This document shows, one piece after another, positions 10,574-62,400 of a stretch of 64,000 nt of DNA. Within the stretch, counting starts at the first letter, position 1; each line of letters starts with the position of its first letter. The DNA comes from Piromyces finnis finn (lineage: Eukaryota; Fungi; Neocallimastigomycota). The stretch lies in NCBI GenBank assembly GCA_002104945.1, contig MCFH01000015.1, positions 1 through 64,000 of the forward strand, written 5' to 3'. The notes beneath the pieces were generated by a model, which was given only the letters and a program-made list of their open reading frames with translations, ran no database searches and had not been told where the DNA came from. The position numbers and the translations under genes are program-made.

Positions 10574-12910
10574 TTATAAACTAATTATTGCAGATTTTTC
10601 AATTACTGATTGTCTATTTTCTATTGCTGTAATTTTTCTATTTGGATTATAATTATTTATTGATGAATTATTCAAACCATTACCATTACATCCTTTATCC
10701 TGTTTTTTTAGATTATCCATTATTTTTTCCATCATCTTTATTAAATCGCCATAATTAGATTTTTTAGCTATATCATAAGGTGATAATCCTTTAGAATCTT
10801 TTAATCCCGGGTTAATATTTTTATTTTTTAATAATAGTTTTGCTGAATCAAAACATTTCTTTTCCAATGCAATGAAAAGTGCTGTTCTACCTTTTCTGTC
10901 TCTTATATTAACGTCAATATCTTTTCGTTTAAGTAAGACTTTTATACATTTTACATCTTTGATAGCTAACATGAGTGGCGTTTTTCTAATATTATTATAT
11001 TTATTTACATCGGTTTTTTTTTGTTTAATTAGCATCTTGATAATATTAACGTTTCGGTGAATGGCAGCAAATATTAATGCTGTATTTTTATATTTATCTT
11101 GCTTATTTAAATCAATATTTTTAATTTTTAATAGTTGCTTTACAGCGGATAACATATTCTTTTCACATGCTACAATTAACGGTGTACGCAATTCGTTATC
11201 AGAAACGTTTACATCAATTTTTTTATCTTTCAATAAAAATTTTAATTTATTCATATTGTTATTAGAGTTTAATTTTATATATGCGAGAAGTGGGGTATCT
11301 CCTGTATTATCTACTGTATTGATTTGAATGCTATTTTGTTGTAAGAGAAGTTGCATTATTTTATACATATTCTTTTCTATAGAATACATTAATGCTGTTT
11401 TATTTTCATTATTGAGAATATTAATATTTATATTCGGCATTTCTAAAAGTGTTTTGACTACTTTCATATTTCCTTTTTTGGCTGATAACATAAGGGCTGA
11501 ATTTCCTTTGTTATCTACTGCATTAATATCTAAATTCGGTCTTTCCAATAATTTAAATATAATTTCATTACAATCTTTAAATATAGCATACATGAGTGCC
11601 GTAATTTTATTATTATTACTGGCGTTAATATCAATGCTATTCATATTCAGTAACATGTCGGCAATATCTATGAATTTCTTATCGGTAGCAATAATTAATG
11701 AGGTATTTCCAAAAGTATTTTTAATATTTACATCTACTTTATACTCTTCTATTAGTCGTTTCATTGTGGTGATATCTTTGTGAATGGCAGATAAAAGTAA
11801 TGGAGAATTACCGTATTTATCACAAATATTAACATCTATTCCAGGATATTTTAATAATTTATCTGTAACTGTTCGATTTTTCTTTTTAATCGCCCAAATT
11901 AATGCTGATCGATTATTGGAATCTGTTAAATTTATATTTTTTACTTGACTATTATTAAGTATATAATTATAGGTTTCTTTATCCCCATAACATATAGCCC
12001 AAATTAAAAATGTTGTTCTCAGTCCTCCTTTATAAGTATAGGAATCAAGCATTCTATCAAGTAATATATTAAAAATATTTTTATCATCACAATCATGTGC
12101 ATTTTTAATTGGGATATGTTTATTGGAATCATAAACGTATAAATCAATTTCAGGATATGAAATTAAAAATTTAATTAATTCTTCATTTTTATTATTAATT
12201 GGAATGTCAAATATAGTTTTTCCATCATAGGTATTAAATTTAACATATAAATCTCTATCTAATATTTCTTTTATTCTTGGAATATTACTGTTTCGACAGG
12301 CATCAATTAAATTTACTTTATCGACTATAATAGGAAGGCTTTGAAATTTTTGTTTTATACTTGAAATATTATTGACCTTGCTATAATCTAAAAATTTAAT
12401 TAGTATTTGAAAAATTATATTATATTGATTAATTAAAATGAGATATTCATTTTTATATTTCACCATTTGTTTATAACCGTCTTTATTTATTACTCTTAGT
12501 TTTTTTGGAATGATAACAAATGATATTACATAATCATTAAGAAGTTCTGGAAAATGTGTAAAAAAATCATTATTATTTAAATCTGCAATAGCTAAAGATA
12601 ATAAAGCATCTCTTTTCTTAACTTCCTTGGTTATATATTCCTTTAAATCTATAAATATATCAATAATCTTTTCTGCAATATTTTCAAATTTTAATAGAAA
12701 GGGATCTTGTAATAATTTTGTTATTGTTTTGTAGTAATAATTATTCTTATCATATATACAATCTAATTTTTTGATTTTTGACATCATTTGATTAAACATA
12801 TCAAGCAATGCAGGATTTTGGGACAATGCCGATTCTATATCATTGTACATGACTTTTTTGGATTTAATATATATTTCATCTTCAAAATCAAAAAACTTTG
12901 ACAACTCCAT
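10574..12910 (-). CDS. Intronless ankyrin-repeat protein (778 aa): about 200-aa helical N-terminus followed by roughly 15 ANK repeats
   Basis: Recurrent G/N-x-T/S-A/P-L-x-x-A...D-V/I-N units, e.g. GNSPLLLSA, GNTSLIIA, GNSALMLSA, GRTALFIA. Confidence 0.9.
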   Translation of the reverse strand: MELSKFFDFEDEIYIKSKKVMYNDIESALSQNPALLDMFNQMMSKIKKLDCIYDKNNYYYKTITKLLQDPFLLKFENIAEKIIDIFIDLKEYITKEVKKRDALLSLAIADLNNNDFFTHFPELLNDYVISFVIIPKKLRVINKDGYKQMVKYKNEYLILINQYNIIFQILIKFLDYSKVNNISSIKQKFQSLPIIVDKVNLIDACRNSNIPRIKEILDRDLYVKFNTYDGKTIFDIPINNKNEELIKFLISYPEIDLYVYDSNKHIPIKNAHDCDDKNIFNILLDRMLDSYTYKGGLRTTFLIWAICYGDKETYNYILNNSQVKNINLTDSNNRSALIWAIKKKNRTVTDKLLKYPGIDVNICDKYGNSPLLLSAIHKDITTMKRLIEEYKVDVNIKNTFGNTSLIIATDKKFIDIADMLLNMNSIDINASNNNKITALMYAIFKDCNEIIFKLLERPNLDINAVDNKGNSALMLSAKKGNMKVVKTLLEMPNININILNNENKTALMYSIEKNMYKIMQLLLQQNSIQINTVDNTGDTPLLAYIKLNSNNNMNKLKFLLKDKKIDVNVSDNELRTPLIVACEKNMLSAVKQLLKIKNIDLNKQDKYKNTALIFAAIHRNVNIIKMLIKQKKTDVNKYNNIRKTPLMLAIKDVKCIKVLLKRKDIDVNIRDRKGRTALFIALEKKCFDSAKLLLKNKNINPGLKDSKGLSPYDIAKKSNYGDLIKMMEKIMDNLKKQDKGCNGNGLNNSSINNYNPNRKITAIENRQSVIEKSAIISL

Positions 12911-31860: not shown

Positions 31861-34474
31861 CATCATCATAAGTATATTTATAATATTTCATTATAATTAT
31901 TTATTTTTCAAATATATAATAATATAAATTTATAATATAATGATATGAAAATAATACAGTAAATTAAGAAAAGAAATCATTAAAAGAAGACAAGATAATA
32001 TGATTGCGAACCAGAGATTATTAGCCGAAAACGTTTTATTAGATATACCATATTCATTTTCAGATTATGTTGATGCTTATCGGGCTTCAAGCTCTAATTC
32101 TAAATCAACTCGAAATTTAGGTAGTCTGAGAGAAAAACTTAATTACGATATGAAAAAAAAGCATTCCAAGATGCTTGATACAAAGACTGTTAATGAAATA
32201 TACAATAAACCTTCATCATACAATAGAAAGTCAGAGTATGATATGATTTGGAGGCAAGCTTCTATAGCAAAAAAATTTAATAAAGGTTCAGATTCTTCTC
32301 CTCCTAAAAATAACACACAGGAGAAAAAGGATTTACCATCAACCTCATTTAAACGACCAAATATTGCTCAACGAAAAATGAAAGAACCAGAATCTACAAA
32401 AATCGATAATAAAACATCACTCTATACCAATACTCTATCGAAAGATAGTAATTATCAGTTATCATCGGCATCATCATCAAGTTATACGAAAAAATATAAT
32501 GATCAAGATAATAATAATAATATGAGGACAAAAGCAAATAATACGAATTCTAGATTAAATTATAATAAGTCTAAATCATTAGCATATAGTAGTAATGATA
32601 AAGCTTCATCATCCAATGATTTTAAATTTAATAGTACTAATAAGTCATCAAGTCATAAGTCAAAATACGATAATAATAATAATAATAATAATGGTAGCAG
32701 TAGCAATAGCAGTAGTAGTAGTAGTAGTAACAATAATGATAATAACAATAAAATGCTACATAATAACAAAAGATGCAATTATGATAATGATGGACATTCA
32801 CAAAGTAATTTTAAGTATAAAAGTAATTATGATAGAATTTCGTATGATGGTGGTGATGATTTAAAATACAAAAATGTCGATAAAAGTATATATAATGATT
32901 CAAAATATAAAAATAAAGATTCATATGATGATTTGAAATACAAGAGTTATAAGAAGAGTTCCTATGATGACTCAAAATATAAAAGTTATGGTAAAGATCC
33001 GTATTATGATGATTCAAAATATAAAAATTATGATAAAGATCCATATAATAATATGAAATATAAAAATTATGACAAAAATTCGAAGGATGGTTCAAAATAT
33101 AGAGATTATGATAAAGATCTATATGATGATTCGAAATATAAAAATTATGATAAAAATTCGTATGATGATTCAAAATATAGAAATTATAGGAAAAGTTCGT
33201 ATGATGATTCAAAATATAAAAATAAAGATTCATATGATGATTTGAAATACAAAAGCTACGATAAAGATTCATATAATGACTTGAAATATAAGAGTTACAA
33301 TAAAGCCTCATATGATGACTTGAAATATAAGAGTTACAATAAAGCCTCATATGATGATTCAAAATATAAGAGTTACGATAAAGATTCATATGATAATTCA
33401 AGATATAAGAGTTACAATAAAGATTCATATGATGATTTAAAATATAAGAGTTACGATAAAGATTTGTATGATGATTCAAAATATAGAAATTATAATAAGA
33501 ATTCGTATGATGATATAAAGTATAATAGTTATAATAAAGGCTCGTATGATGGTTCAAAATATAATAAAGATAGAGGTGTCTCCAGTAATGACATATTATA
33601 TAAAAATAGCGATAAAGCTTCTTACAACGATTTAAGAGATAGTAAGAATAAGGACAAGGATAATATAAAATCATTGTATTCACCCAATAATGATCAATAT
33701 TCCTATTCAGAAATGAATAATAAAGGACGTTCATCGGTAGAACGTCCAAAATTACATAATATTTATTCTCGTTTTTCATCTAATAATAATTTAAGTAGTA
33801 GTAATTATCGTTCGTCAGCGTCAACAGAAGACTTAACATTAAATAATAATAAATACCAAATTTCACCTCAAACCAATACCGATCTTCATTATAATGATTT
33901 AAATCAAAGTTCCAGCAGCAGTATTAATCGTATTCTTTTTAATAATCCAGGCGAAGATACCGTCAAAGAAAATAATTCAAGTAATGGTTCAGATTATCAA
34001 TCCAGCGGTAGAATAGCTAGTCGTTATTCAAACACTAATAGATATCACCCATATAAGAAATTAAGTAATGAACATCCACCAATTGATCGTTCAACCCTAA
34101 CTATAAATGATCATCCTTTAGTTAATTCGAAAGTAATATCAAAATCAGATTCTGAACCATCAAAAATTAAAGAGAGTAATAAAGAATTTTCATCAAGAGA
34201 AGTACTAAGATATCTTAAACCATACTTGAAAAAGAAAGTTAATACTAATTATATTTCAAAAGACCAATATAAAAAGTTAACTAAAGACCTAACCTATTAT
34301 GTCATTAAAAGAATGAGTAAAGATTACAGTGGAGATCATAAAATGAGTTTCAATGAATTAAAGGAAGATTTTCTTATTGAGCAACAATTTACCAATAAAA
34401 TAATAATTAATTTTATTAATTACAATCTCAGGAAATTCCTAGCTTATAATAAAGAACTCCATAAAAAATTCTAA
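30781..34474 (+). CDS. RING finger + PHD finger protein with a C-terminal SRI-like domain (PHRF1/SCAF11/Asr1-like), about 5 exons
   Basis: CSICLEDL...CNHKFHEACIKLWSE/KACTCPIDR (RING); [43 protein letters not shown] (PHD); C-terminal EVLRYLKPYLKKK...ISKDQYKKLTK. Confidence 0.85.
32864..33560 (+). repeat. Coding minisatellite: about 18 copies of a 39-bp / 13-aa unit (consensus KYKSYDKDSYDDS)
   Basis: Read from the translation of 32000..34474. Two 11-aa variants (KYKNKDSYDDL) and one 14-aa variant are present. Confidence 0.92.
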
Positions 34475-35492: not shown

Positions 35493-38400
35493 TTAATTTG
35501 TTAAGGCTAATTTTCTTAATAATTCAGCATTAACTGGACCTGTTTCATCAACTAACTTTGAGAATTCAGTTTTACTGGATGGCATCATACTTCCATCTTC
35601 TTGTTTTTCAAACAATAAATTACTTGGTTTATCATATTCAAGAATATTACCATTACTTAAAACTAAAACTTTATCGTAATCTATAATAGTATTCAAACGA
35701 TGGGCAATGGTAATAACTGTAACATCTTTAAATTCTGTTCTAAGTGCCTTTTGAATAATAGCATCAGTTTCAACATCAACAGATGCAGTAGCTTCATCCA
35801 TAATAAGAACACGACTTTGACGAATCATAGCTCTGGCTAAACATAATAATTGTCTTTGACCAACACTGAAATTTTCACCATTTGAACGAACTTCAGCTTC
35901 TAACTTATTTTCTAATTCACTAACCATATTCTTTAAACCAGCATGTTCTAATGCTGCCCAAATTTCTTCATCTGTATGTTCATCAAATGGATCCATGTTA
36001 AATCTAATGGATCCTGAGAATAAAATTGGATCTTGTGGGATAATGGAAATTCTTCTACGTAAATCATTTAATTTAATGTCTAAAATTGAAACATCATCGA
36101 TCTTAATAGATGATCCTTCCTCTGGTTCAACCAATCTAAATAAGGTCATAACAATACTAGATTTACCTGCACCAGTACGACCAACTACACCAATCTTTTC
36201 ATTAGCTTGAATATCTAATGAAATGCTGTTCAATACTGGTGGTAAATGTGGAGCATATTTCATGGTAAGATCCTTAATTTCAATCTTACCGTTTTGTGGC
36301 CAATCCTTTGGAACATCTAAACCCTTTTGATTTTCAGTATCAATTTCATTGGCATAATGACTTAAACGTTCAGCAGCATTCATATGAACTTCGGTTTCAC
36401 TGAATTGACGAACAGCCCAATTAAGATTACCAGTAACACTTAATGAATAGGATAAACTTAAACCAAGTAAAGCTGGGGAAATAGATTTTTTAAGGATGAT
36501 ACCAGACATAGCAGCAAAGAAGACCAAGAATGCACCAATGGTTTCTAATCTTAAACCTAACCATCTTTGAGCAGTAATTTGTAAAATGCAAGGTCTGTTA
36601 TTATTATCCATAAAAGTATCATTTATATTAATAAATCTATCTTGTTCACGGTAAGCTCTAATAGTAGATAAACCATTCATTGTTTCAGTAAAGTTAGCAT
36701 ATAATGGTGATCTTGCTAAGGAGTCAAGACGCTTAATTTCTCTTGAAGTATTTCTATAGAATTCTTGCATTAAATAGTAAATTACTAATAATGGAATAAG
36801 GGCAATTAAAAAGATTGGGGTGGCATATATAATTAATAATAATGTGGAAACAGTGATAGCAAAACAAGAAAGGAAAGATTGAATGGATTCAATTAAAACG
36901 CCATCAACAGAATCTTGATCCTTTGAGAATCTATTAATAATTCTACCTAATGGAGTTGTATCAAAGAAAGATATTGGGGCACTCATTACTCTAGCAATGG
37001 CATCTCTATGGATTTTTCCAGCAGCTGAGATACCAGTATAGGCAATGCAGATACCAAATAACATTTCAGTAATAGCTTGTAAGAAACTCCATCCTAAATA
37101 TATAAGTACATAGGCTAAGGTAGTAATATCAAATTTTTTATCAGTCCAGAATACCAACCACATATCATTACCGATTTTTGCAACTTGAGTTAAAATAAGA
37201 AAAGCAAGTACAGCAACAACACAGCCTATACCACCAGCAGCTCTTACATAGAATTTGTAGATACTGAATTTCACAGATCCAGTGTTTCTTTCTTCCTTGG
37301 TCATTAATCCTTGTTGTTCTTTCTTTTCATCCTTTTCCTTTGGTTTTTCACTATCAGTTTTGTCATTGGCAACATCTTCTTTGGAAATAGTGGCATCATC
37401 ATCTTCTTCCTTTTCACTTGATTGTTCTAAATCAGATAATTCACTTTCATCCTCATTTTCATTATTTATCTTTTCATCAATACCACCATAATTACGCATT
37501 AAGCGAGCAAATTCACCTTCATTACTCATTAATTCATCATATTTACCTTGTTCTTTAATTTCACCATCTTCTAAATAAATAATATAATCAACTCTAGGTA
37601 AAACATGAAGTTGATGAGTAACTAAAACACGAGTTTTTTCGGAAAGTGTTCCAAGAATACATTTATCAAATAAATAACGACTAACATGAGCATCGACTGC
37701 TGAAAGTGGATCATCTAAAAAGATAATATCACTATCGAAATATACAGCTCTTGCTAAATTAATTCTTTGCTTTTGACCTCCTGAAAGATTAATTCCACGT
37801 TCACCAATTTCGGTCATATCACCATTTGGGAAAATTTTTAAATCATGTGTTAAAGCACAACTTTTAACAGCTTCCATATACTTTGAATGATCATATTCCT
37901 TACCAAATAAGATGTTATCTCTAACCGTAGCATTTTGAATCCAAGCTTGTTGTGGACAATAACCAATAGTTCCACCAAATACTATTTCACCACTTTCACT
38001 CTTCATTTCACCAATTAAAGCATTAACTAATGAAGATTTACCGCTACCTACGGCACCAACAATAGCAGTTAATGATTTTTTTGGAATAGATAAATTAAGA
38101 TTTTTAATCTTAAATGGTTCGAAATCTTCTTGATCATTGGCATCCTTTTCATCAGAATTATTCTTTTGTTCGGAAGTTTCAGTGATATCTTTTTCCTTTT
38201 TAGATGTCTTTTTTTTGTTCTTTTTATCTTTTTTATTTTCATCATCAGTAGTTTTTTCATCTTCTTTTTTAGTTTCCCAATAGAAATTTCCATCCTTTAC
38301 AGAAATAGCAAATTCAGAATTTGGATCAATTTTTGGTAATTCGTCTAATTCTTCACCACTAATAACGTTATTAATACGTCTTAAAGCTACAACAGTATCA

Positions 38401-39981
38401 GCTAATTGTCCTGAAACCATTGGTAAAATACCTAATGGGAAAGATAACATATTAAAGAAGGCAAGAGAAGAGAAAACCTTACCTGCAGTTAATTTATTAC
38501 CAGCTACAGCATAACAAATATAGGTAACAGAACTAGCAAGTACTGGAATAATACCAGTAACAGAATCAACACCAGTGTAAATAATAAGTGATTTTCTAAT
38601 ACGAGCTAATTCTTTTGAACGTAACTTGTTAATAATATCTAAAAAACTAATTTCCCATCCAAAGAACTTAATTACTCTCATGCTACCAATAATTTCTTGA
38701 GTTTTTTTAACACGTTCATCGGTAAAAATAACAGTTTGTTCTCTTAAAGAAGTTAACCATTTCATAATATAACCTTGTAATGGAATAAGGACAACGAAAA
38801 TTGAAAAACCAATTAATGCCCATAATCTATATTATAAATAGATTGAAATTTAATAGCAATTTAATATAATTTAATTATAATAATGTTAATGATTAATAAG
38901 TATTTAATTGCATATATAATTAAATACTTATTAATCATGAATATAATAATTACATATATACAATTATTTAATTTTTTTTTAAAAAAAAATAATTTATATT
39001 TATTTACCCTAATGCACGAATTAATAAAATTAAAATTACTACTAATTGGAATGGACCACTCCATAAATAATGAAGATAACTACAAAGTCCTTGAATTCTT
39101 GATGAATCAGAAGAAACAATATTAATAATTTGTCCTTCAGTTAAATGTTGCTTTGCATTTTGTGAAAGCTTAAGCATTTTTCTATATATAATTCCAATAA
39201 TAGTTGCTCTAACACTAAGACCAACTTCCATAACTAATTCAAAGTAAGTATTAATAAATATGGTAGCTAAGATTTGAAGAACAAATAATACAACGGCATA
39301 AATCCAACTATAATATAATGATAATATAATATTTAATTATTAAAAATTATTACATTTATTACATTATAAATTATATTCAAATAACTTTTTTTTTTTTTTT
39401 TTTTAATAATTACCCTTTATAAGCTGGTTCATTAGTATTATTACTAACAAAATTTAATAATAATTCTAATATAATTGGTGAGGTAAGATTACAACAATCC
39501 GAAAAGAATTTTAAAATACCAGATGGAATCCTATTATTTTCAATAATAGTTTTAAAATTAAAAACAATAATTCAATTTTTATTAGTTACTACCATCCATT
39601 AAAAAAAAAAAAAAAAAAAAAAAGAAGAAGAAGAAATTACATTGGAGGTAATTTAAAATTTAAAACTATCTATTTTTTAAAATCAATTAATACTTACCAT
39701 TTTGGACCAAATACTCTTATAAAAGTTTTAAGGATGCTAGGATTATCCTTTCTTTTTATTAATTCTTTATCCCATTCTTTATAAAAATTATCAGCTAATT
39801 TCTTTTCTTCAAATTTAGGGTCAAGTAAGTATAAATCATTATCTTGAAGTGGTCTATTATAACCTGTAATAAAAATAGGATTTGCCCACCAATATGTTAT
39901 CCTTGATAACCATGAAGCTTTTGTGTAGGGTGTAGGTATAGGTTCCTTTGGAACTGGAATATCTTTTTTCTTAAATAACAT
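35493..39981 (-). CDS. ABCC/MRP-family ABC transporter without TMD0 (YOR1-like); several short 5' exons and one ~3.3-kb last exon
   Basis: N-terminus ASWLSRITYWWANP...RPLQDNDLY; NBD1 GAVGSGKSS and LSGGQKQR; NBD2 GRTGAGKSS and FSVGQRQLLCLARA; TPLGRIINRFSKD. Confidence 0.95.
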
Positions 39982-43181: not shown

Positions 43182-46100
43182 ATGGAGAATAATGATACTA
43201 ATAAAGTAATTTAATTATATTTATTTATTTATTATTATATATATTGATAAAACATAAAGAATATTTATTTAATAAATAAAATCTATTTATCTAAAAATTT
43301 ATAAATATATATATAATAAAAACTCACATTTTTTTTTAGCTCTATGCAAAATCAATAAATATACCTGTTACATCTTCTTATAATAGTTTGACTGTTGAAC
43401 ATATACCAAATTATAATAGTAATACTTTACATATTTAATAAATTGATGTAAAATATATATTTTGGTTATTCCTATTTATTATTATTTATTTACTAATAAA
43501 CATTAAACTTTTAAATATTTAAATAATATTTTGAATTTGAAATATGTCACATTATAATAGCATTTAGCTATTCTGAAGATAATTCTATTCACGGTAGTAC
43601 ATATGAAAATAATGATATTTTTAAAGAAAATATTCAATTGAAAAATAATCAATTTGATTCTTCATGTTCACTTGTATTTAAAAAAAATGATTTAAATTCA
43701 TCACATGAAATTAATAAAAGAAATAAAACATCTGCGTTATCTTCGGCACTTCGTGCATCTAATCATTTAAATAAATCTAATAATACTAATAATAAAATTT
43801 CATATGATATTAAGCAAAATGAAAGAAAATATAACACAGGAAATACAGATAATGATAATAAAGAATTATTTTCTAATAATTTAAGTGATTTACCAAATCT
43901 TAATAAAGAAAAATATAATGATTCTAAAAATGATACTAATGATACCAAATCAAAAATAATAACTGAAGACAAAAATACTGTTGGAACTGATTCTTCAGTT
44001 ATAGCAGAGAAACCTCAAAAGGAAGGAATAAATATAAATGATTTCTCACTGAATTCAACAACAACGACAAAAAATTCAAATGAATCATCCTTAATACCAT
44101 ATAATAAAGATAATAAATTAAATATTCTTCGTTTTGCAAATAGTGATTCAATCCTCTTACCAAATCAACAAGAATTTCTTCTATCTAAAAATATTGAATA
44201 TCTTAGTGTTAACACTGTACAAAATGATAAAAATATATGTCAAACATGCAAAAATAAATTAAAAAATCAATTAACTAAACCTCACCATGTGCATCATCAT
44301 GATAATTATATATCATTAGATTCACAGGTAAAGATATCAAATATTAATTCCATTGATATTATTGGTGCAGGAAATGATCGTAATAGTATAACAACAAATA
44401 CGCTAAATCGTATGTTAAATTCACCATCGTATAGTCAGGTTTCAATTGATAGACAACAACTTTCAATAGATAAATTAAATAACAAAGAAAAGACAAAAGC
44501 TATTGTAAGTTACTATGCAGACGAAAAAATAAGTAATAAAATTGATCCATCTTCTCATACACTAGAAGAATTGACCCATACTAGTGATGACACAAAGGAA
44601 AATTATATTAAAACCGAAAAAAAAGAAAAGAGAAGAGATAAAATAAATACTAAACATGATTTCATGGAATACCCATTGATTGAAAAAAAAATATATTCCT
44701 TATCTTTAAATGATAGTGATATTCTGAAGGGTAACCCAACTCCTTTAACTTCTTTAACTCCATTAAATAATACCTCAAATTTATTTGAAAATAAGATAAA
44801 ATTATTCCATCCTAAACAATCCTTTAAAAATACAGAGAAAAATAATGTCGTATCGAATGAATTAAGTAATTCACCTATAGAAAATTGTAAAAATATCATG
44901 AAAAAAAGTAGTAGTAATGACATTACTAGGAATGGTAAAAAGAATGATAGTATTGATAAAGAAGATATACTATCACTAAAAGCTGATAATAATTATAATC
45001 AGGATAGTAAACTATTTAATAAATCCTTTAATAAGGATAATAATACTAATACTAATAATGATGATGGTAATGAAAATGACCAAAGTTATGTTGATGAATT
45101 GCTTAATAATAATATTGAAAGTTCAAGAGAAGTAAAAGACAATGATATAATACCAGTATTGTCACCAACAAAAAAGGAACAAAAAGAACCAATACCATAT
45201 TTGAAAAAAGACTCTAGCTATTCTAATGCCGATATAATGCATATGGATAATAATATAAGCTTAATAAGTCTTGAAGTAGAAAATGAGGATAAAGATCAAT
45301 TACCAAGATTAGGAAATGAATCAAAAGGAAGCTTTGAAGATGAAGATGATATTAGAGCATGCTCATTTGAAAATGAAGAAGATTTAATAGATAATATATT
45401 TGATAAGGCATCACCGACATCATTACCATTGCTTCCATATGGACATCAAGTTGGAGGTCATGCACCATTTTTAAGATTTTCTGATAAAGCTTTATGTAAG
45501 TTAATGAACCCAGCGGAAAGGGCCTTTTATGAATCTGTAAATAATATATATCCTCAATTACGACCATTTATTCCTGGCTACTACGGTGTCATTAATGTAT
45601 ATTTTAATAATAATAATGGAAGCGATGGTAACAGTAATACGTGGGTAGATAATATACCTGTGGCTATCATTGAAAATGAGAATTATAGTAGGAATAATAG
45701 TCAAACTATTACTTTTGAATCGGCGGGTGATAAATCCTCTCAACTATTAAACCCATCTTCATGTAATAATTATTTAAATCATGATCATAGTTCTTGTAGT
45801 GAATGTGGAAAGCCAAATATATCTCCATTATCTCATAATAGTACTAAAGTTTCTGTAGATAATCAAACAGACAGCAATAATAAAGACAAAAGTAGTAGTG
45901 GTGGTATAGCGATTAACACTAATAATAAAAAGGTTCCAATAGAATATATATCGTCTTATACCGATGGTGAATCACGGATGGGAAATTACAATTATTATCA
46001 AAAACTTCGTGAAAAAGTATTACGTGATGCATTAACTATTCAAAATCGTCGTTATAGATACTCACAATTAAGAGCTTCATCTTTAACAAGATTAAAAAGA

Positions 46101-47165
46101 AGACATTCATTAAATGCATTAAGTAATGAATACCAAGGTTTTACACCTTTAATAGAAGATAAACCAGATGTTAAAAATACAGATGCATCAATGATAGGAC
46201 AAAATATAAATCCTTGGTCATTACATTGTCTTAATAATCAAATCAATAAAATGGGACAAAGTGATAAAGAGAATCAAAAACCTGAACAATTTATTTTAAT
46301 AGAAGATTTAACGTATGGTATGAAATATCCATGCATTTTAGATTTAAAAATGGGAACACGACAACATGGTGTAGATGCAACCCCACAAAAACGAAAATCC
46401 CAAGAAAAGAAGTGTGAATCAACAACAAGTAAATTATTCGGCGTTCGTATGTGTGGAATGCAAGTTTATAAAACTAATACAAAGACATTTGAATATTCTG
46501 ATAAATATAAAGGTAGAAAGATTGTTGCATCGCATTTTAAAGAAGGACTATTATCGTTTCTTGATAATGGTGAAAAATTACTAGTAGGATTTATACCAAA
46601 AATTGTTGAAAAATTAAAAACATTATATTCTGTGGTAGAACAATTAACAACATCTCGCTTTTATGCTAGTAGTCTTATGTTATTTTATGATGGTGCATGG
46701 GCTGATGAGGAAAATGAATCCAATTCAAATCATAATTTACTTTTAATACACAATTCTGACAATTATCTAGACAGACATAATACTAATAATGAAGATGATC
46801 CAGATTCATACTCAACGGTTCAACGTTGTCTATACAATAAAGAAGTTGTCGTTCATTTAATTGATTTTGCACATTGTACTAATGATGCCCATTTAATGGT
46901 ATCAACAGATCCTAAAAAAAGAGGTGATATAGATATCACTCAACCAGTAATTAACTCCATTACAGGAAAAGAAGAAAATTACATCTTAGTACCGTTCCCC
47001 CCAACACATAAAGGTCCCGATATGGGTTATTTATTAGGCTTAAGAAATTTAATTATGTTTTTTGAAGAAATTTATAAAGACTTTGGCGCTAACGGTCATG
47101 TTTATAAAAAGGATTACCCAGAAATATTTAATAAACAAAATATCAATTCTGAGTTTAAAGAATAG
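43182..47165 (+). CDS. KCS1: Inositol polyphosphate kinase (KCS1/IP6K-like). Main exon about 43560-47165; start probably at ATG 43182 via short upstream exons
   Basis: IPK motifs HQVGGH, FILIEDLT, PCILDLKMGTRQHG, FYASSLM, LIDFAH, and GYLLGLRNL. The track ORF begins at TTG with no in-frame ATG back to TAA 43524. ATGGAGAATAATGATACTAATAAA|GTAATT at 43182 is a plausible first exon. Confidence 0.88.
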
Positions 47166-47493: not shown

Positions 47494-49942
47494 TTAATCT
47501 ACAATTTCAAGATTTCTAATATTAAATATAATAATAATAAAATATTGGAATATTTAATTAGTATTATTAATAAACTATATAAATATTTATATATTTATAT
47601 TTAAAATATACATTTGAGAGAGTTTAGAAAGATTTTCAACAGAATCTGGAATTGGACCCTTTATTTGATTATTACATAAGAATCTAATATATTTTTATTT
47701 AAAAGGTTGATATGGATTATTTTTTTTTTTTTTTTAATTTATTTAAATAGTATTATAATATTATAAATTAATAAAAAATAATTTACAATAAAGAAAGATT
47801 AATTAAATAGCCGATAGAATCTGGGATTTGACCGTTCAAAGAATTTGAATCTAAACGTCTATTTTTATTATATTTACATAATTTAAATGTTAAAAAATAA
47901 AAAAGTACGATATATAATTTTTCTTTTTCAATTATTTGCATAATGACTTACAAATGTGTTAAATTTATTAGATTTCCAATGGAAAATGGAATTGCACCAT
48001 CTAAGTTATTATTATTAAGATAACTAAATATATATATATTATAAAATTATTAATAATAACCTTTAGAGTCATTTTAAATTATGATAATATACTTACAGTC
48101 CAATTAATGTCTTTAATTGACATAAACTTAATGGAATATTACCAGATATCTGATTGTTTTCTATATGTCTAAATATATAAATTAATAATAATAATAAAAA
48201 GTTCAATCAATATAAATATTGATAATAATAAATTAAATATTTCAATATTATTAAATATTTACAATAACGTTAATTTATTTAGACTTCCAATGCTTTTTGG
48301 TATTTCTCCATGTAAAGAATTGTTATTAAGCCATCTAATAATTAATTTATTAAAAATATTATTAATTATTAATTTTATAATTTTTAAATTAATAATTATA
48401 AATGACTTATTTAAAATAAAATAAGTTACAATCTTTCAAGGTTTTGTAGATTGCCAATAGATTCAGGAATAGTTCCATCTAAGCAATTTAAGTTAATTAA
48501 TCTTTTATATATTTGGGTGTTGTTATAAAATATAAAATTAATATTCACTTAGTACTAAATAATCTCTCTTAATAATAATAAATAATATAATTAAACAATT
48601 CTTTACAATGCGGTAAGGTTTTCTAAATCACCAATAGAATTTGGAATATTTCCACTTAATTGATTATTATCTAAACGACTATTGCATTATTATATAATTA
48701 TATAGTATTAATAAATTAAAAATAATAAAAAAAAAATTAATCCAATAAATATTTTTAGTATTTATTACATTAAATTCAAATTCTTTAATTTTCCTATTGA
48801 GCTTGGAATTTCACCGTGTAATTGATTAAGGTTAAGCCATCTTTATTTTTTTTATTTTAAATAAAAAAATATTATGAAATAAATAATAAATAAGTATTAG
48901 TAAAAAAAAAACATATTGAATTGCATTATGAGATATAAAAAAAAATAGTTACAATCTATTCAAATTTTTCATTTGGCCAATTGTTTCAGGAATTTCATCA
49001 CTTAAATGATTAATATTCAATAATCTTTTATATTAAATTATTTTAGTAATGTTAGAAAAGATTAAGTTGTCATATAATTGATATAATTTGGCATTTTTTT
49101 TATACTACAAGTATAATTTTTAAACTTACAATCCATTAAGTTTTTTCAAATTACCAATGGAAGGTGGTATACTACCGTCAATTTCGTTATTATCTAAACG
49201 TCTATATTAAAAATAATGATAATGTTTTAACCATTGTTATTATTATTTTTTTCATTAAAAATTAATAATTTTAATTGTCCTACAATTCTGTTAGATTTTC
49301 AAGTTTTCCTAAAGTATCTGGTAATGGTCCAACAAATTTATTGTTTTGCATAGAACTTTTTTTTTATAAAGTATTATAAACAATATATTAATATTTTTAT
49401 ATGTATTATTGATCCTATACTATTTAATTAATTACATGATAGTAAGTTCATATAAATTGCCAATGGATTTTGGAATAACACCTGTTAATTGATTGTTTCT
49501 TAAATATCTATTTTTTAAAAAAATGGGTTTTTTTTTTTTTTTTTTTTTAAAATTTATATTTAGAAAAAATATAAATTGCATAATATGTATATAATTATTT
49601 AAAATAATAAAGTTAATAAATAGGTATTCCATACAATTCTGTTAAATTTCTTAATTCTCCAATTTCTTCTGGGATTTTACCGCACAATTGGTTTTCTTCC
49701 AAATGCCTTTAATATATAAAAATTAACAGAATTGTTATATTAATATAAACATAAAAAGTATAATAAAAATATATTTTTTGCATACAATAATCTTAGATTC
49801 TTTAATTTTCCAATAGTAGCTGGAATAATTCCTGAAAGTTGATTGAAATTAAGCCATCTATTTTTTATAATGTTATGAAAATCCGTTATGTTATTAATAT
49901 TATTTTATATTTTTATCTAAATTAATATAATATTATATTTCG

Positions 49943-49973
<31 letters not shown>

Positions 49974-52900
49974 TACAATCTATTTAAATTTGATAAGTTT
50001 CCAATTGAAGCAGGAATCTTTCCTTCAAATTTATTAATATTTAAAAGTCTATATAAATAAAATATAATTTTATATTGTTAAAAAATAAAATTTTCCCTTT
50101 TTAATATTCAATATATGAAATAATAATATGAAAATGCCTACAATCCATTCAAGTTTACCAAATTTCCAATTGATTCTGGAATTTCTCCACTTAATTGATT
50201 ATTATCGACACGGCTGTAGCATTTAAAAAACAGATATAATATATAATATAATTAATAAAATGTATTTATTTCATTATTATTAACATTATAATATTAATAT
50301 ATATAAATATCTTACAATTCAGTTAAATTAATTAATTGACCTATAGAAGGTGGTAATTTTCCAGAAAGTTGATTATTATGAATATACCTATTATCAAGTT
50401 ATTAATTCAATTCATTAAAATGAATTTTTTATATTTCATTATTATTGTAATATGCTATTAAATAAATTTACAATCCAGTTAATTTCGATAAACATCCAAT
50501 CCATTGTGGAATACTTCCATTTAATTGATTATTTTCCAAGTGTCTATATACCAAGATTTTTTTTTTTTTTAGAAAATTAAAATTAATAAATAATTAAATA
50601 GTAATAATGTATTTTTTTAAAATTATTATTATTATTATTTCTACATACAAAATAGTAAGGTTTTTAAGTAATGAGAAATTATCTGGAATATGACCCTCTA
50701 ATTGATTAACATTTAACCATCTTTCAAAGAAGAAGAAAAATTTTAATTTCAAGATTAATAATATTACTTGATTAATATATTATTATATCTATTTTATCAA
50801 TAATTTAATATAATTAAATATTTCATTATGAATACTACTAACAATCTTTCTAGATTACTAAGATTTCCAATAGATGGAGGAATTGAACCTTTAAGTTTAT
50901 TGATATTAATTAACCTAATAAAAAAATTGATTGATTTAATTTAGAATAAATTGGCCTTATTAAATTTATTAAAGAATTAAAAAAAATTATAATTTAATAG
51001 TTTTTTAAATATTTACAATCCAGTTAAATTTCTTAATTTTCCAATACTTGCAGGGATAGCCCCAGTTAATTGATTATTATCGAGACGACTATTGATATAT
51101 ATTTATTTAATGATGCATTATCATTATAATATTTAATATTTATAATTAATATTTATAAATAAACAATTGAATAATAAAATAAATGTATTTAAAAATTACA
51201 GCAAAGTAAGATTAGATAAATTTCCAATTGAAGAAGGAATCTTTCCACTTAGCATATTATTATTTAACCATCTGTTAATTTTATTATAATATACAAAAAA
51301 AAATTAATACTATTAATAAAATATAAAATAAATAATTATATTTAATTCATACAATCTCAATAAGCTTGTCATATTTCCTATGGTACTTGGAATACTTCCA
51401 GAAAGTTTATTTACATTTAAACATCTATATTATTTATTTTTTAATATGCACATAATTAAATATATAAATAAATTATATATATATTTTTTAAAAATTTATT
51501 TATAATTTTTAAATAATTAAAAATTAATAATTACAATAAAGTTAAGTTTCTCATATTTCCTATAGATACCGGAATTTCACCTTCAATCATATTTGTATCC
51601 ACACGTCTAATATTTATAAAAAAAAACTAATCAGTATTTGATTATGGCTATTTAAAATTTCAAAAACTATGAAAAGTTATTACAATTCTTGAAGATTAAC
51701 CAAATTTCCAATATTTTCTGGTAATTTACCATTTAATAAATTATTTCTTATATATCTGTAATTAGTATAATAAGTAAATTTATGTTAACATTTAGCATAC
51801 TATAACAGCCACATATAAAAAAAATGAAATACTATTAAATATTATTTACAATCCTGTTAATGATGTTAATGAGCATATTTCATTTGGAATACTACCACAT
51901 AATTGATTATCTTCAAGATGTCTATTATTAAAGACCATTATATTATTAATAATTACTCATTTATTTCATTATATTAAATTAGTTATAAAATTTTTAATGT
52001 AATTACAAAATCTTGGCTTCCTTAAGATTTCCAATAGATTTTGGAATATGACCAGTAATATGATTAAAGTTAATCCATCTTATTATATATTTATAACAAA
52101 TTGTTTGTTAGTAATACTACAATATATAGTTAAATAGAAAAAAAAAAAGACTTAATATAATTACAATTCTGTTAATTGCTCTAATTGACCAATAGAATCT
52201 GGAATTCTTCCAGAAAGTTGATTATTATTTAAATATCTAAATAATATATAAAAATGGTATAACTTAATATATATTTTTTGCTTATAATTTCATTACATTT
52301 ACAATTATATATTCTTTACAATCCATTAAGATTTTTTAATTGTCCGATTTCTGATGGAATAATTCCTTCAATCTCGTTATTTTCTAAATGACTATTACAT
52401 ATATAATATATTCATTAATATATAAATTACAATTTATTTTCTAATTTTTTCATTAAAAGTTTAATATATTAAATTATCCATACATAAATTTTAAACTTTC
52501 CATTTCAGCAATTCTTTCCGGAATAGCACCGCTTATTCTATTATTACTTATCCATCTTTTAAAATATAAATGAATATATCAATAAAAATGAATTAAATTT
52601 ATTATATATAATAATTAATGATTTATATTTACAGTTCAGCTAATTTTTTTAAATTTCCAATAGAACTTGGAATGGTTCCATTTAATTGATTAATGTTAAG
52701 AATTCTAAATTTCCATGGTAAAATATATTATTAATAATTATTAACTATTTTCATAATAAATTTATGATAAGGGATAATAATAATTATATTCTTACAAAAT
52801 TATTAAATTGCTAAGATTTCCAATGGATTCTGGAATTGATCCAGTTAATTGATTATTATCAAGTCGCCTAATTTTTATTTATAACACTTTTATTAATAAT

Positions 52901-53653
52901 CCATTTTTTATATTAAAAATTTTTAAAAATTTTAAAAATTCTTACAATTGTAAAATATTTTCCAAGTTTCCGATAGAATCTGGTATTGAGTCTTTCAATG
53001 AGTTGTTATTTAAATATCTTTATATTATATACAGAAAAAAGTTATTCACATGTTTGTTTATTAATATTATTTTAGTATATAGTAAATATTATTTTTCTTA
53101 CAATCCAATTAATTTTTGTAATTCACCAATAGATTCCGGAATTGCTCCATCTAAATAATTATTATCTAAATGCCTATATAAATATATATGAATCAATATA
53201 ATTGAACCATACTACGATAAGTTATATTTTAAGTTTGAACAAATTACATCAAGTATAGATTTTTGAGATTTCCAATCGAATTTGGTATCATTCCTGAAAG
53301 CTTATTATTATTTAATCCACTTTTGAAAAGAAAATTAAAAAATTAATTTATTGGATATAAATCATTAATTGTATTATAAGAATTACTTACATAACTCTTA
53401 AATTAACTAAATTTCCTATATTCTCTGGTATATTTCCAACAAATTCATTATGATCCAAACGTCTATTAAAAATATATATAAATATAAAGGTATAATTAGT
53501 TATAATAAATACATTAAATAATTGTATTTATCTATTAATATATTTTTCATAATAATTACAATTTTTTCAATTCAACTAATTGGCAGATTTCATTTGGAAT
53601 GATGTGGCTTAAGGAATTATTATTTAACCATCTTTTTAGATAAAAATAATATA

Positions 53654-53684
<31 letters not shown>

Positions 53685-56600
53685 TTAAAAAATATGCTTA
53701 TTTATTATTATAGTAAAAAGTAATAAAATATTTTACAATCTTCTTAAGCTTCTTAAATTTCCAATTGATTTTGGAATAGATCCAACGATATGATTTTGAT
53801 TTAAATATAATCTTTTTAAATTAGTTAATTTTCCAATAGAATCAGGAATACATCCGGTTAACATATTTTTATCTATTTTTCTTTTTATTTTTTATATATT
53901 ACAATATTAGTAATTAATTAATCCTTAAAAATATGTTGTAGTATATTATATACTAACAAGACTTCAATATTAATTAAATTATCAATATTCTTTGGAATTT
54001 CACCAGTTAATTCATTATCAGATAAATATCTATTATAAAAAATAATATTAAATTTAATATTATAAATAATAGATTTATTATAGTATATTTTTGTTTGAAA
54101 AATTAATTTACAATTCTTTTAAAGAATATAAATTTGAAAGTGTTGCTGGTATTTCACCACTGAATCTATTATTTTCCATTTGTCTATATTAATTATTTAT
54201 TTTAAAAAAAATTATTATAATTAATATATAATTATTTTAGTATTTATATTTTTTATATTTTTTTGTATGTATTCAAAATATTTATATGTATAACATTTAC
54301 AAAATAGTTAATTTTTTAAGATTCTCTATGCCTTCAGGAATTTGACCTGAAAGATAATTATTATCCAAATATCTACCAAAGCAATAATACATTTTGTTAA
54401 TTAATATAATACAAAACTATTTTTATATATAATATATATAATAAATTAATTAAAAGAATAAGTACAATTCCTTTAAAGAATGTAAGTTTTCAATGGATGA
54501 TGGAAGTCTTCCCTCTAACATATTATTACCTAAATGACTAAATTGTTAAAGTAATTAATGATTTATTAATATTATTTTATTAAATAATAAAAAAAGTTTT
54601 AATTGCGTACAGAATTTCTAAATATTTCATGTTTCCAATAAATTCTGGAATTCTTCCTTCAAGACGATTATAACTCAAATATCTAAAAATATAATATATT
54701 TTATATTTTAAATATTTTTCATTAAAATATTCAACCTTTTTTTATACTATTATATTACAATTCTTTTAGGTTATTTAAATCTTTTAAAGCATCTGGGATT
54801 GATCCTCTCAATTTACAATTAGTTAATGTGCTAAAAAAGTATTTATAATAAGATAAAAATTTTAATAAATATGATATATATTTATAATATTGATACTACT
54901 ATAATTACATTTTTGAAATATTTTTAATTAAAGATATTGATGATGGAATCTTAAAATCATATTTTATGAAGAATGGATCGATATTTTCGGATATACTGTT
55001 AATATTACTATTTTAATTTTTATCATTATATCAATATAATTAGTTAGGAAAAAAAATTAATAATATTGGAATTAATAATTTTTTAAAAATAATTACATTT
55101 CATCATTAGTTGCATATTGTTTAATAATGCTGTTTGGTATATAATTATAATAATAATAAACGTCATTAGTCATTTATATAAATATTCATATACGATCATA
55201 AATATTATTTTACAAACATATGCAAATGCAAATATATATGTATATATTTACTTTAATGTTAATCTTGGATTTATAACTAAATTATTATTTTTTTTTGTAT
55301 TTATAGAGAAATATTCTATTAAAGAATCAACATTTTCTACAGTTAAAAAGTGCTTAGAATTTGAATTTACTAATTCATAACTTTCATTGTGGGAATTGAC
55401 GATATCCTGTTTATCTTTTACATAAACAATAAAAATTTTGTCATTAGATTTTTGAATTAACTTTGACTCCATCATTCTGATATTTGCTTGGGTCATTTCA
55501 ATGTTTGATATTATCCATGTATTTAATGGATTTTTATTATTTGATTTATTTATAAGGTTCTCGCTATTAGTAATAAGAGTATTGAAATCAATATTTTCAT
55601 AATCCATTGAATAAATATCAAAATTTGATAGTTCGTTGAAGTAATCTAACTTATTACAAGTGAAACCAATATCAAGATTTTTATTTATATTTGTGATTAA
55701 TGCTATTCTATTACTAGTATCATTTGAATAACATTCACCAATAACTGCAGGCATTAACGTTAAATTTTGATCATATTCACTATCCCAATATAAGACAATT
55801 AATATATCTGTATTTATAGCATCTGGATTAATTAACATTTTTTGGTTACGATTAATTTCAGTTAAATCTTTAATCATTTTATTCATCATATGAAGAAATA
55901 GAATATCTCTATTCATATGCTTTTTAAATTTCTTAATTTTTAATGCATCTAAATAGCATTCATTATTATCATTTATACTAAATAGTTCATAGGATGACGT
56001 AGTGAAAATTGGATACATCGAAAATTCGCTTATAATATTCATGAAAACAATATCTTCCTTTGAATCATTTACTTCTGTTAAAGATGAATCAGAACCAGAA
56101 TTATTTAAATAATTGTCTAATATAATATAAGTTGGTCTTCCTTGTTTTGCAACAGTATCAGCAATTTCTTTATAGGTTTTCAAAATTTCATGATCATCAT
56201 TTGCAATTTTTGGAATTAAAATAACTACTGCGTTTATATATTGTTTATTATTTACAGGAATATCGTTATTGTAAATAGAATAAGAATTCATACTTTGCAT
56301 AGTTTCATCTAAATTATATGTATTAATTGAATTCCAAAGTTTATTATAGTCATCTGATGTTGGTTTCTTAGTGAGATGAATAATACTATCATCATTAGGA
56401 AAATAACCGTTGATAATATATTTTAACACTTCTTTATTGTCATTTTGAGATGAACTAATATGATTGTAATTTTTATTATAAAACATTCTTATATTTAATG
56501 GCCATTGTTCATTATTTAAAAAATTTTCTGAAAAACTTTTTTCAATAGTTTCATCATTTGATAAATCTATTTTATTAATATTATAATTCTCAAATAATAA

Positions 56601-57257
56601 CTTCATACTAGTTACTAAATTTTTTGAATTTTCTAAAGAAGGACCAAGTAACATTATATTAAATATTTCATTTGTTTTATTAATTTTTAAAAAATCTTTA
56701 ATGAAAAAGTCAGATGTTACGTTAAATAAAGTTGGATAACTCTTTATCAGAGTTCCTTGATTATTATTATTGCTAATTAATCTTATAGAAATATTGTTTG
56801 GTAAATTATCTATCAAATTTTCAATAGCATATACACAATCAGATGAAGTATCATAATTATCTAAATTTAAATACTTATCACATATTGTTAAATTTACTTC
56901 TTTAACAATAACTTCATTAATTTGAATTGAACTGATTACAAAAGAATATGTATTAAAATAATTTTCACTACTAATTATGCATTTAACATTGCTTATCTCT
57001 TCAAAACAATCATTTAAAATGGTAATATAGGCTTTGACATTTTGACCTATTCCATTATAATGTTTTGCAAAAGAGAATTCAACTTTTAAATAATTATTAT
57101 TTTGTGGACAATCTTCTATATCATTTGGTTCTAATTTTACAAAAGAATATAATGAATTTTCATTTTCAATATTATTTGTAACTATTGAATTATCAATATT
57201 TAAACTGTGAGCGATTAAATCATCGACAATAAAATGACTCTCATTAAAGTTGTTCAT
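47494..57257 (-). CDS. Predicted ~1,800-aa intracellular LRR protein: exon 1 (57257-55252), linker exons (55129-55097, 55007-54909), 44 LRR exons (54830-47612), and a tentative last exon (47515-47494)
   Basis: Each LRR exon translates to a 24-aa xLxxNxLxGxIPxxIGNLxxLxxL repeat, e.g. 47787-47858 RLDSNSLNGQIPDSIGYLINLSLL and 54759-54830 TLTNCKLRGSIPDALKDLNNLKEL. All are flanked by AG/GT in phase 2. The exon-1 donor AA|GTAAAT is also phase 2. The LRR array itself is very secure; the join to exon 1 and the last exon are predictions. Confidence 0.85.
47612..54830 (-). repeat. Exon-intron tandem array: 43 exons of 72 nt plus one of 144 nt (45 LRRs), average period about 164 nt
   Basis: Counted exon by exon. 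On the + strand each unit appears as ..tac-aat....ccaat....ggaat....att(a/g)tt....ct.., separated by AT-rich introns of roughly 70-130 nt. Confidence 0.95.
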
Positions 57258-59493: not shown

Positions 59494-62400
59494 ATGAAGC
59501 AATTATCAACTTCAATGGATAATATTCATGTGGCCATTAGAATAAGGCCATTACCACAGGAAAATGATACTTCAGTATGGTCAGTAAAGGGAAATGTTAT
59601 ATCTCCAACTATTGACTCAAAAGTAATATCAAGTTCTTCATATTGTGTTGGTAAGAAATATATTAAAAATTCTTTTATTAAAAATTAAACTAAAAATTGA
59701 AGAATAAAATTATTTACATATTATTAAATGTTTCTATATATAATAACATATAATAAAATAAAGATAAAATATTTAATGTTGATTCAAATACAGAAGATGT
59801 ATACAATTCTTTCATAAGACATATAATTTGTTCGACTATGGATGGTTTCAATGGTTAATAAGAATAATTTTTTATATAATATTAAAATGTATTGTAGATG
59901 TAATAAAATAATTGAATTATTTAATTATAAATAATTATAATATAAAGGTACTGTTTTTGCATATGGTCAGACATCATCCGGAAAAACTCATACAATGCAT
60001 GGAGATAGAAATGACCCTGGAATTATACCTCGCGCTATTCATGATATTTTTCACATAATTCAAAATGTAATGAAAAAATATATAAATTTGATGGATTTTA
60101 CTTAAATTATTAAATATATATACAAATTCATATATATATATATATATACATTTATTTATAATAAACAATCAAGACCCCTGATAGAGAATATTTATTAAGA
60201 GTTTCATATTTAGAAATATATAATGAAAAAATTAAGGATTTATTAAATCCATCACATGAAAATTTGAAAATTCATATGAAAAATGTAAGAATTTTTATAG
60301 TAAATGTTGTAAAAAAATAAAAAAAATAATAATAAAAAAAAAAGTAGAATTTTATCTAATAATAACAAATGCAAAGAATGAATTTTACGTTGATAATTTA
60401 ACAGAAGATATTGTTTTAAATCCTGAAGAAGTTGCAAATCTATTGAAAAAAGGAGATGGTAAATTAGTAATAAAATTAGTAGATTCATTTAAATTAATAT
60501 AATAAACTAACTTTCCAAAACAATTTTACCAAGATTTTAGACATGTTGGTCAAACAAATATGAATGAACATAGTAGTAGATCACATACAATATTTAGAAT
60601 GGTAAATTTAAATAACTAAAAATTATAATAATAAAATAATTATAAGAATTAAAAATTTATAGCTCATAATACTTTCTTTTTTTTTATTATTGTTATTATT
60701 ATTTGATATATGATAGATTATTGAAAGTAGAGAAAAAAATAGCAATAATGAAACAAATAATAATTCAGCAATTAAAGTTTCACATTTAGTAAGCTTATAA
60801 TTTATACATTTACATTAAAAAACAATAAAAATAGAAAATATTTTAATATAAAAATAAAATCACATTTTATTTTCAGAATTTGGTTGATTTAGCAGGTTCA
60901 GAAAGAGTTTCGCAAATTGGTGGTGATGCCCAACAAGTAAAAGAAGGTGTTCATATCAATTTAAGTTTATTTACATTAGGTGTAGTTATCGCAAAACTTT
61001 CAGAAGGAAATGATAAGTAAATATTGAGAAAAATAAAAAGTATAATATTAATTTATATATATTAATTTATATATATTCAATTATTAAATAAAAAAAAAAA
61101 GTGCACATATACCTTATAGAGATTCAAAATTGACAAGAATATTACAACCATCACTTGGGGGTAATGCAAGAACAGCAATTATTTGTACTATTACACCTTC
61201 GATTGATTACCAAGAAGAAACTCATAGTACATTGAAATTTGCAATAAGAGCTAAAACAATCCAAAATAAACCAGAAGTTAATGAAGTATGTATTTTATAT
61301 TGATATTAAATAATAAATTAATGAATTATTATTAATATAACTAAAAATGACAATTCTTTAAATATATAAAATAGATTGTATCAGATGAAGCATTATTAAA
61401 GAAATATAGAAAGGAAATCAGTTCTCTAAAAAAACAACTTCAAGAAGTAATATTGATATAATTATTAATTACATTAATATTAATAATTAGGATACCTATT
61501 AATTATTAATTATATATTTTTATTTATTAAAAAAAAGATACAAACCCAAGATAGATTAACTGAATTAAGCAAAGTAGATAACTATATATAAATTAATAAT
61601 TTTTTATATAATTAAATTCGATTTTATTTGTACAATTTAAAATTGATTAATAAAAACATAAACCTATAGATTAAAGAGCACAATATTGTAATGATGAAAA
61701 AGTTAGAAGAAAAGGAACAACATGAGGTAATATAGTAATAATAATAATAATAATAATATATAACAAAATAATAGTAAAAAAGGGAAAACTTATTTATATT
61801 TAATAGGCAAAATTAATGGAAAACTTAGAACAATTAAAAGCTATACCAAATGAATACATTAATAAAATTAATGAATTAGAGCAACATAATGAATTAATAT
61901 CTAAGAAACTAGAAGAAAAGGCAGAAAAAGAAGTATTTATTTATTTACTACAACTATATTATAAGAATTGATATTTGATATTTAATCATATATTACAATT
62001 ATTTAAAATAATAAAATAAAAAGGTTAATCATGAATTACATATCAAAAATTTATTCAATGGTATCGAAAATTTATGTGATCCAACTAAATTAGAATTTGT
62101 CCCAGAAGAATTAAATGTAAATGAATTGATTATTATATCGATATATTTAATATAATATTAATTAAAATATTGTATTTATTATTATATCATAGAATGTTAA
62201 AAACTATATAAAACAATTATTAAATACTGTAAGTGATGCTAAATTGATAATAGAACGTTATTCTATTAAATTTGAAAAAGATGAAGATTATTTAAAATTA
62301 GAAAGAAAAGCATTTAATGAGGTATTAAAATATTATAAGGCATTTAATATATATATATTAAATAAAATATATATTTTAAATTAAATATAATAATATTGTT

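Follow-up and report, generated by a model that had tools for sequence, protein, structure and literature searches.

Predicted pseudo-GTPase and MIDAS-less vWA folds in the conserved head of a leucine-rich repeat protein of anaerobic gut fungi

Introduction

In the ROCO proteins, which include LRRK1/2 and MFHAS1, leucine-rich repeats (LRRs) are joined to a ROC GTPase and a COR domain. GTPase-type domains that bind no nucleotide are represented by the pseudo-GTPase domains of p190RhoGAP and by CENP-M, and intracellular vWA domains devoid of the metal ion-dependent adhesion site (MIDAS) are found in Ku70/80, in the Sec23/24 trunk and in TFIIH p44/Ssl1. In IFI44 and IFI44L, interferon-induced proteins of vertebrates, a G domain stands behind a putative TLDc domain. 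The putative TLDc domain of IFI44 is described in PMC5614904. Bacterial conflict systems provide an earlier example of a vWA domain paired with a TRAFAC GTPase, of the AP-GTPase or the AIG/GIMAP type (PMC7159879). Here, we analyzed a stretch of 64,000 nucleotides from Piromyces finnis (contig MCFH01000015.1, positions 1 to 64,000, forward strand; hereafter the window), in which an LRR gene on the minus strand encodes a long N-terminal head in front of its repeats. An initial annotation had read this head as an Ig-like part followed by an IFI44-type P-loop domain that has lost its active site and by a degenerate vWA domain. Our results make the interpretation of the head as a pseudo-GTPase plus a MIDAS-less vWA domain plausible and partly supported.

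Results

The head is the first exon of an LRR gene

The 669-aa open reading frame (ORF) at 55248-57257 on the minus strand was found to be the intron-free first exon of the P. finnis gene BCR36DRAFT_286381, and not a complete gene (Table 1). The corresponding NCBI protein (737 aa), which is already publicly annotated as a hypothetical protein, is 100% identical to the ORF translation over its first 668 residues and continues after the split codon as ...RLTL-N-IIKQY. The apparent stop codon of the ORF is made by the splice donor in three taxa, namely by the TAA of GTAAAT in the window, by the TAA of GTAAGA in the orthologous metagenome contig L102 (about 5794-5805), and by the TGA of GTGAGT at the same point of contig L105 (about 4985-4996). 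Both contigs share the layout of the window, with an exon 1 that has no intron and ends in ...NPRLTLK, immediately followed by the donor as an apparent stop. Because the donor overlaps the stop codon in three taxa and the public model continues beyond it, exon 1 is considered to be fused to the LRR exons. The same linker was present in the models of Piromyces sp. E2, Anaeromyces and Orpinomyces, and the Orpinomyces models contain the head and the LRRs within a single chain. The repeats that the initial annotation had placed behind the head were seen downstream as about 45 LRR mini-exons; matches to the LRR motif numbered 41 in the array of the window, 37 in L102 and 43 in L105.

Gene callers that read the donor as a stop codon emit a "protein" of 666-670 aa, and metagenome entries are stored in that form. 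As to the other end of the exon, the start methionine at 57257 is common to all orthologs and the only conserved block upstream belongs to a divergent kinesin gene, so the start codon, as judged from the sequence comparison, is sound. An upstream exon or a signal peptide encoded there was considered and rejected, since the interval from 57258 to the kinesin start at 59494 contains no block of conserved coding sequence.

The head is conserved in a single fungal lineage

A phmmer search against 1.84 billion cluster representatives matched 3 proteins, and a search of 5.8 billion sequences returned 8 proteins, the same ones with a single-sequence or a profile query; the profile search of the larger set added no new relatives, and a metagenome scan for additional orthologs found none. 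The named relatives came from P. finnis, Piromyces sp. E2, Anaeromyces robustus and Orpinomyces sp., the others being metagenomic, and the orthologs were 56-74% identical to the window protein. Within the reach of these searches, the head is restricted to Neocallimastigomycota (anaerobic gut fungi). Each named genome harbors one copy; Orpinomyces has two gene models, which look like one locus modelled twice.

The Nei-Gojobori method was used to estimate the ratios of nonsynonymous to synonymous substitution rates (dN/dS) for P. finnis against two orthologous contigs, at dS values of 0.8-1.2 that are near saturation. The ratios were 0.13-0.18 for aa 1-184, 0.15-0.17 for aa 185-475 and 0.17-0.27 for aa 476-669, which indicates that all three segments of the head are under purifying selection. 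From the low ratio in each segment it follows that the head is a real, constrained and lineage-restricted protein module.

Nucleotide- and metal-binding motifs are absent from every ortholog

The strings on which the initial annotation had based its reading were all located in the protein, with NIMLLGPSLENSKNLVTSMKLLF at aa 200-222, RDILFLHMMNKMI at aa 450-462, DILIVLYWD at aa 484-492 and ELVNSNSKHFLTVENVDSL at aa 628-646, together with RIALIT, TWIISN and KIFIVYV. A motif scan of the window protein and 8 orthologous sequences revealed no Walker A motif ([AG]xxxxGK[ST]), and neither the G3 motif DxxG nor the MIDAS motif DxSxS in any ortholog. A few NKxD strings (G4) were present, located elsewhere than at the end of strand 5 and not conserved among the orthologs. 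The loss of the Walker A GKS and the lack of a MIDAS in the rear part, both claimed initially, were hence confirmed for every ortholog. The cytosolic location proposed at the same time also holds: as no Kyte-Doolittle mean over 19 residues exceeded 1.09 and the N-terminus is not hydrophobic but acidic, the head has neither a transmembrane helix nor a signal peptide, and a cytosolic protein is a reasonable inference.

Fold predictions for the middle and rear domains

In the structural model, the middle domain (aa 185-475) starts with a strand at 199-204, the GPSLENSKN loop, a helix, an insert, the strand WPLNIRMFY and further helices, and continues with the strand AVVILI and a helix, the strand TYIIL followed by DN and a helix, the strand PIF followed by TTSSY, and a long C-terminal helix. 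This predicted order of elements fits a G domain without G1, G3 and G4. In the alignment, the orthologs read GPSLE, APSLE or GSSLD at the loop, and strand 5 ends in ILDNY, of which L380-D381-N382 is invariant. A language-model search with aa 185-475 returned ten concordant P-loop cluster sets at scores of 0.82-0.86; the neighbors comprised DUF815, chordate MMR_HSR1 clusters, "G domain-containing protein", septin and Gtr1/RagA, with an "interferon-induced protein 44-like" cluster at rank 3. Among the sub-threshold Foldseek matches, entries for EngA, G-alpha, Get3 and SPARTA were enriched, and a structure-based listing also names Rab6, Sar1, RagA, Der, septins and G-alpha, the middle domain filling the structural match lists. 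We regard the chances of a G-like fold for the middle domain as about evenly balanced.

For the rear domain (aa 476-669), the elements were predicted in the order beta-alpha-beta...beta-alpha, with YW(D/N)xxYDQ at the end of strand 1. The language-model search with this segment gave scores of 0.87-0.91, and all named clusters were vWA (PF00092/PF13519), some of them Ssl1-containing; the top match was an unnamed 171-aa viral/bacterial cluster. A vWA-like fold is here slightly favored. According to the calibration of the search, scores at or below about 0.9 are leads only, and true family members typically share 170 of 256 features. The leads nevertheless carry weight because the two families and the two segments are those predicted beforehand from the reading of the sequence.

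A number of results weigh against these fold assignments. In Pfam at E <= 10, nothing consistent was obtained for the whole protein, for all orthologs or for the single segments, including no MMR_HSR1, Ras, AIG1 or Septin match for aa 185-475 and no VWA match (PF00092, PF13519) for the rear segment. Searches of the PDB with phmmer and hmmsearch gave 0 matches for the folds proposed, and PHROGs and NCBIfam gave no consistent match to the head. The hhalign comparisons with G domains, the YegL vWA domain and TesA were all negative despite a working positive control, in which YihA matched the G profile built without YihA with 97% probability. The middle segment showed no significant match to YihA alone (E 0.63) or to 9 E. 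coli G domains (P = 0.16), the best and likewise non-significant stretch placing aa 363-380 on helix 3-strand 5 of the G-domain profile, and the rear segment was negative against a 16-sequence YegL vWA profile (P = 0.64). These are weak tests, with an effective number of sequences (Neff) of about 1.6 in the query alignments and thin target profiles: the YegL search yielded near-identical E. coli sequences and the YihA metagenome scan yielded relatives of 86-100% identity, and 16 YegL-family loci and the 9 E. coli G domains were used instead. Taken at face value, the profile tests do not support membership of any family.

AlphaFold2 (AF2) with a single sequence gave a predicted local distance difference test score (pLDDT) of 33, which is unusable. 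With an alignment of 8 sequences, and run on the whole head, it gave a mean pLDDT of 44.5, with 50-76 over aa 190-420; in the rear domain, values above 60 were confined to aa 560-610 (64-73), most of the remainder being below 50. Foldseek against the PDB returned nothing at E <= 1e-3, the language-model search with the whole protein returned no match, and both segments shared 95-154 of the 256 features with their neighbors, below the typical number. The test set beforehand for the P-loop and vWA folds therefore had a divided outcome, as the profile searches were blank, whereas the language-model neighbors fitted in the predicted segments at sub-threshold scores.

Alternative explanations for the head

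The blank result of every profile method, language-model scores not exceeding 0.91 and the few shared features are what would be expected if the two domains were lineage-specific, unrelated to G or vWA domains, and if the neural-network methods simply returned the commonest doubly-wound alpha/beta families. The search tool itself states that a third of shuffled proteins obtain ten concordant matches, and an atlas fold search reached a template modelling score (TM) of only about 0.2, which is meaningless. Such a generic attraction is rather unlikely, as the two segments gave two different families, each foretold by sequence reading alone, and the G-like matches span the entire core (aa 196-424) and are far more numerous among the top 50 than those to other alpha/beta folds. 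We consider it less likely still, and improbable, that the middle domain is a degenerate SGNH/GDSL hydrolase, in which case the strand-rich N-terminus might be a CE2-type jelly-roll and the whole a dead esterase-like module. The best atlas row by target TM was a GDSL lipase cluster (0.41); the G205-P-S-L loop, conserved as G/A-P/S-S-L, resembles GDSL block I, A-N353-D-D resembles the block III motif GxND, and in the model a single strand, not a hairpin, connects helix 1 to the helix that follows. However, block V (DxxH) and the block II glycine after strand 2 are absent, Pfam gave no Lipase_GDSL match, and hhalign against TesA gave P = 0.06 over 13 residues only. Moreover, the language-model neighbors are all P-loop and none is SGNH, and the six strands with a long C-terminal helix in the model are of G-domain style.

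By analogy with NLR and ROCO proteins, the protein might also act as an innate-immune sensor, in which binding of a ligand by the LRRs would free the G-like/vWA-like head to oligomerise, signal or kill. The vWA components of bacterial conflict systems do associate with AP-GTPase or AIG/GIMAP-type GTPase effector domains (PMC7159879). This possibility is nonetheless very unlikely: no NACHT, NB-ARC, COR or effector domain was detected with Pfam, there is no intact P-loop to serve as a switch, and the gene exists as one copy whose orthologs correspond 1:1 between genera, at a dN/dS of about 0.17. Since the gene is single-copy and under purifying selection, a fixed partner fits better than a diversifying receptor.

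The N-terminal segment

The beta-strands predicted over the first ~150 aa come from models with a pLDDT of about 30. For aa 1-184, no Pfam, NCBIfam or PDB profile match was found, Ig included. An Ig-like fold, a TLDc-like sandwich as in IFI44 and a CE2-type jelly-roll would be equally conceivable. The PADLOC profile Cas2_II matched aa 56-128 (56874-57092, minus strand) in all 7 orthologs, with a best E of 5e-5. As the Pfam, NCBIfam and PDB profile searches did not reproduce this match, it was rejected as a probable artefact of composition in AT-rich DNA; the GC content of the window is very low (0.14-0.39). A single, very weak PDB profile match (E 5.2) to the LRR repeats of LRRTM was recorded at aa 125-171 (56745-56885, minus strand), which may be due to chance or to the presence within the head of one or two degenerate turns of LRR type.

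Features of the locus and neighboring genes

Table 1. Positions of the LRR gene and of its parts in the 64,000-nucleotide window
Feature	Position	Strand	Remarks
Exon 1 of LRR gene	55252..57257	minus	aa 1-668 plus two bases of the next codon; ATG at 57257
N-terminal segment, aa 1-184	56706..57257	minus	strand-rich by prediction, AF2 pLDDT 25-33
Middle alpha/beta core, aa 196-424	55986..56672	minus	predicted G-domain-like, less probably SGNH/flavodoxin-like; long helix follows to about aa 471
Loop after strand 1, G205-P-S-L-E-N-S-K-N213	56619..56645	minus	P-loop position, without GK[ST]
C-terminal alpha/beta domain of head, aa 484-653	55299..55808	minus	predicted vWA-like strand/helix order, without MIDAS
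Splice donor GTAAAT	55246..55251	minus	its TAA is the apparent stop of the ORF
Linker exons (two, short)	about 55097-55129 and about 54909-55008	minus	join head to repeats; tail of public model maps there
First LRR exon	about 54757-54831	minus	tail of public model maps onto window
LRR array	47590..54830	minus	about 45 plant-type 24-residue LRRs, mostly one per 72-nt exon; three-frame listing

A kinesin motor gene (59494-61303, plus strand) and the LRR gene are transcribed divergently, with about 2.2 kb between the kinesin gene and the ATG at 57257, and the kinesin neighbor also lies upstream of the ortholog in contig L102. Further long ORFs of the window encode a retroelement reverse transcriptase (578-3262, plus strand), a pyruvate formate-lyase with a glycyl-radical domain (6059-8482, minus strand), an ankyrin-repeat protein (10574-12910, minus strand), an ABC transporter (35493-38765, minus strand) and an inositol polyphosphate kinase (43638-47165, plus strand). 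An 824-aa ORF at 32000-34474 (plus strand) has no Pfam match.

Discussion

In this study, we propose that the head forms the N-terminal part of a single-copy cytosolic protein whose body would be a 45-repeat LRR solenoid. Its middle domain is predicted to have a three-layer alpha/beta fold, the most likely origin of which is a G domain of the TRAFAC/IFI44 type; having lost G1, G3 and G4, this domain would be a nucleotide-free pseudo-GTPase. The rear alpha/beta domain of the head most likely has a vWA-type fold without the metal-binding MIDAS site. Such a head would have no enzymatic or canonical nucleotide-switch activity and might serve as a fixed platform for protein docking or oligomerisation, coupling a ligand bound by the LRRs to other components of the cell. 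This role is suggested because no ortholog has the canonical motifs for binding of nucleotide or metal, although purifying selection acts on each segment. A non-enzymatic docking platform on a cytosolic LRR scaffold is most likely the function of the head; for the complete proposal, in which the platform is built of a motif-less pseudo-GTPase and a MIDAS-less vWA domain, we see even chances. The sequence comparisons show how the gene is built, that the head is conserved and confined to one lineage, and that the motifs are absent, the two folds and the scaffold mechanism being what we infer.

If the two folds hold, a G domain without its motifs and a vWA domain without a MIDAS would be joined to a very long plant-type LRR solenoid, a combination for which no description was found in the literature searched. 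The protein would then add another case of pseudo-enzyme domains that act as scaffolds, in anaerobic gut fungi, and would offer a testable handle on the role of cytosolic plant-type LRRs in fungi. If they fail, what remains is an orphan head of 669 residues on which purifying selection clearly acts, and not a defined new system.

A more far-reaching interpretation is that of a genuine IFI44-type module, consisting of a TLDc-like sandwich and a G domain, which lost nucleotide binding and was fused to a vWA domain and 45 LRRs. If true, IFI44-type immune modules would exist outside animals, and an early-diverging fungus would possess a class of single-chain cytosolic sensors in which a GIMAP/IFI44-type pseudo-GTPase replaces the STAND ATPase. 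We judge it quite improbable. The fungal head does resemble IFI44/IFI44L in its predicted layout, in which a strand-rich N-terminal part precedes an alpha/beta domain that is G-like and similar in size. On the other side, the fungal orthologs are without Walker A or any other G motif and show no profile-level similarity, and the fungal protein, which belongs to a fungal lineage with no detectable intermediates, has a vWA-like domain and 45 LRRs in addition. Searches of the literature for IFI44, vWA and GTPase together found nothing relevant.

Comparison with the other described systems places the protein apart from several of them. SGNH/GDSL hydrolases such as E. coli TesA and the CE2 esterases differ in length, the fungal domain exceeding a typical SGNH domain by about 80 residues. 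NLR/STAND proteins are set apart by the absence of a NACHT or NB-ARC Pfam match and of a Walker A motif anywhere in the head. In relation to the ROCO proteins, the fungal order is reversed, with the head in front of the LRRs, the P-loop is destroyed, and the LRRs belong to the plant-specific 24-residue type; no Pfam Roc or COR match was found in the head, no kinase was detected, and the domain behind the G-like part is vWA-like. The bacterial vWA-GTPase systems are matched in the proposed pairing; the fungal head has no Pfam VWA match and no MIDAS, and neither a MoxR partner nor an operon context accompanies it. To the pseudo-GTPase domains of p190RhoGAP and to CENP-M, the fungal head has no sequence relationship. 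With Ku, Sec23/24 and p44, it would share a vWA-type fold that is located in the cytosol and used for protein docking.

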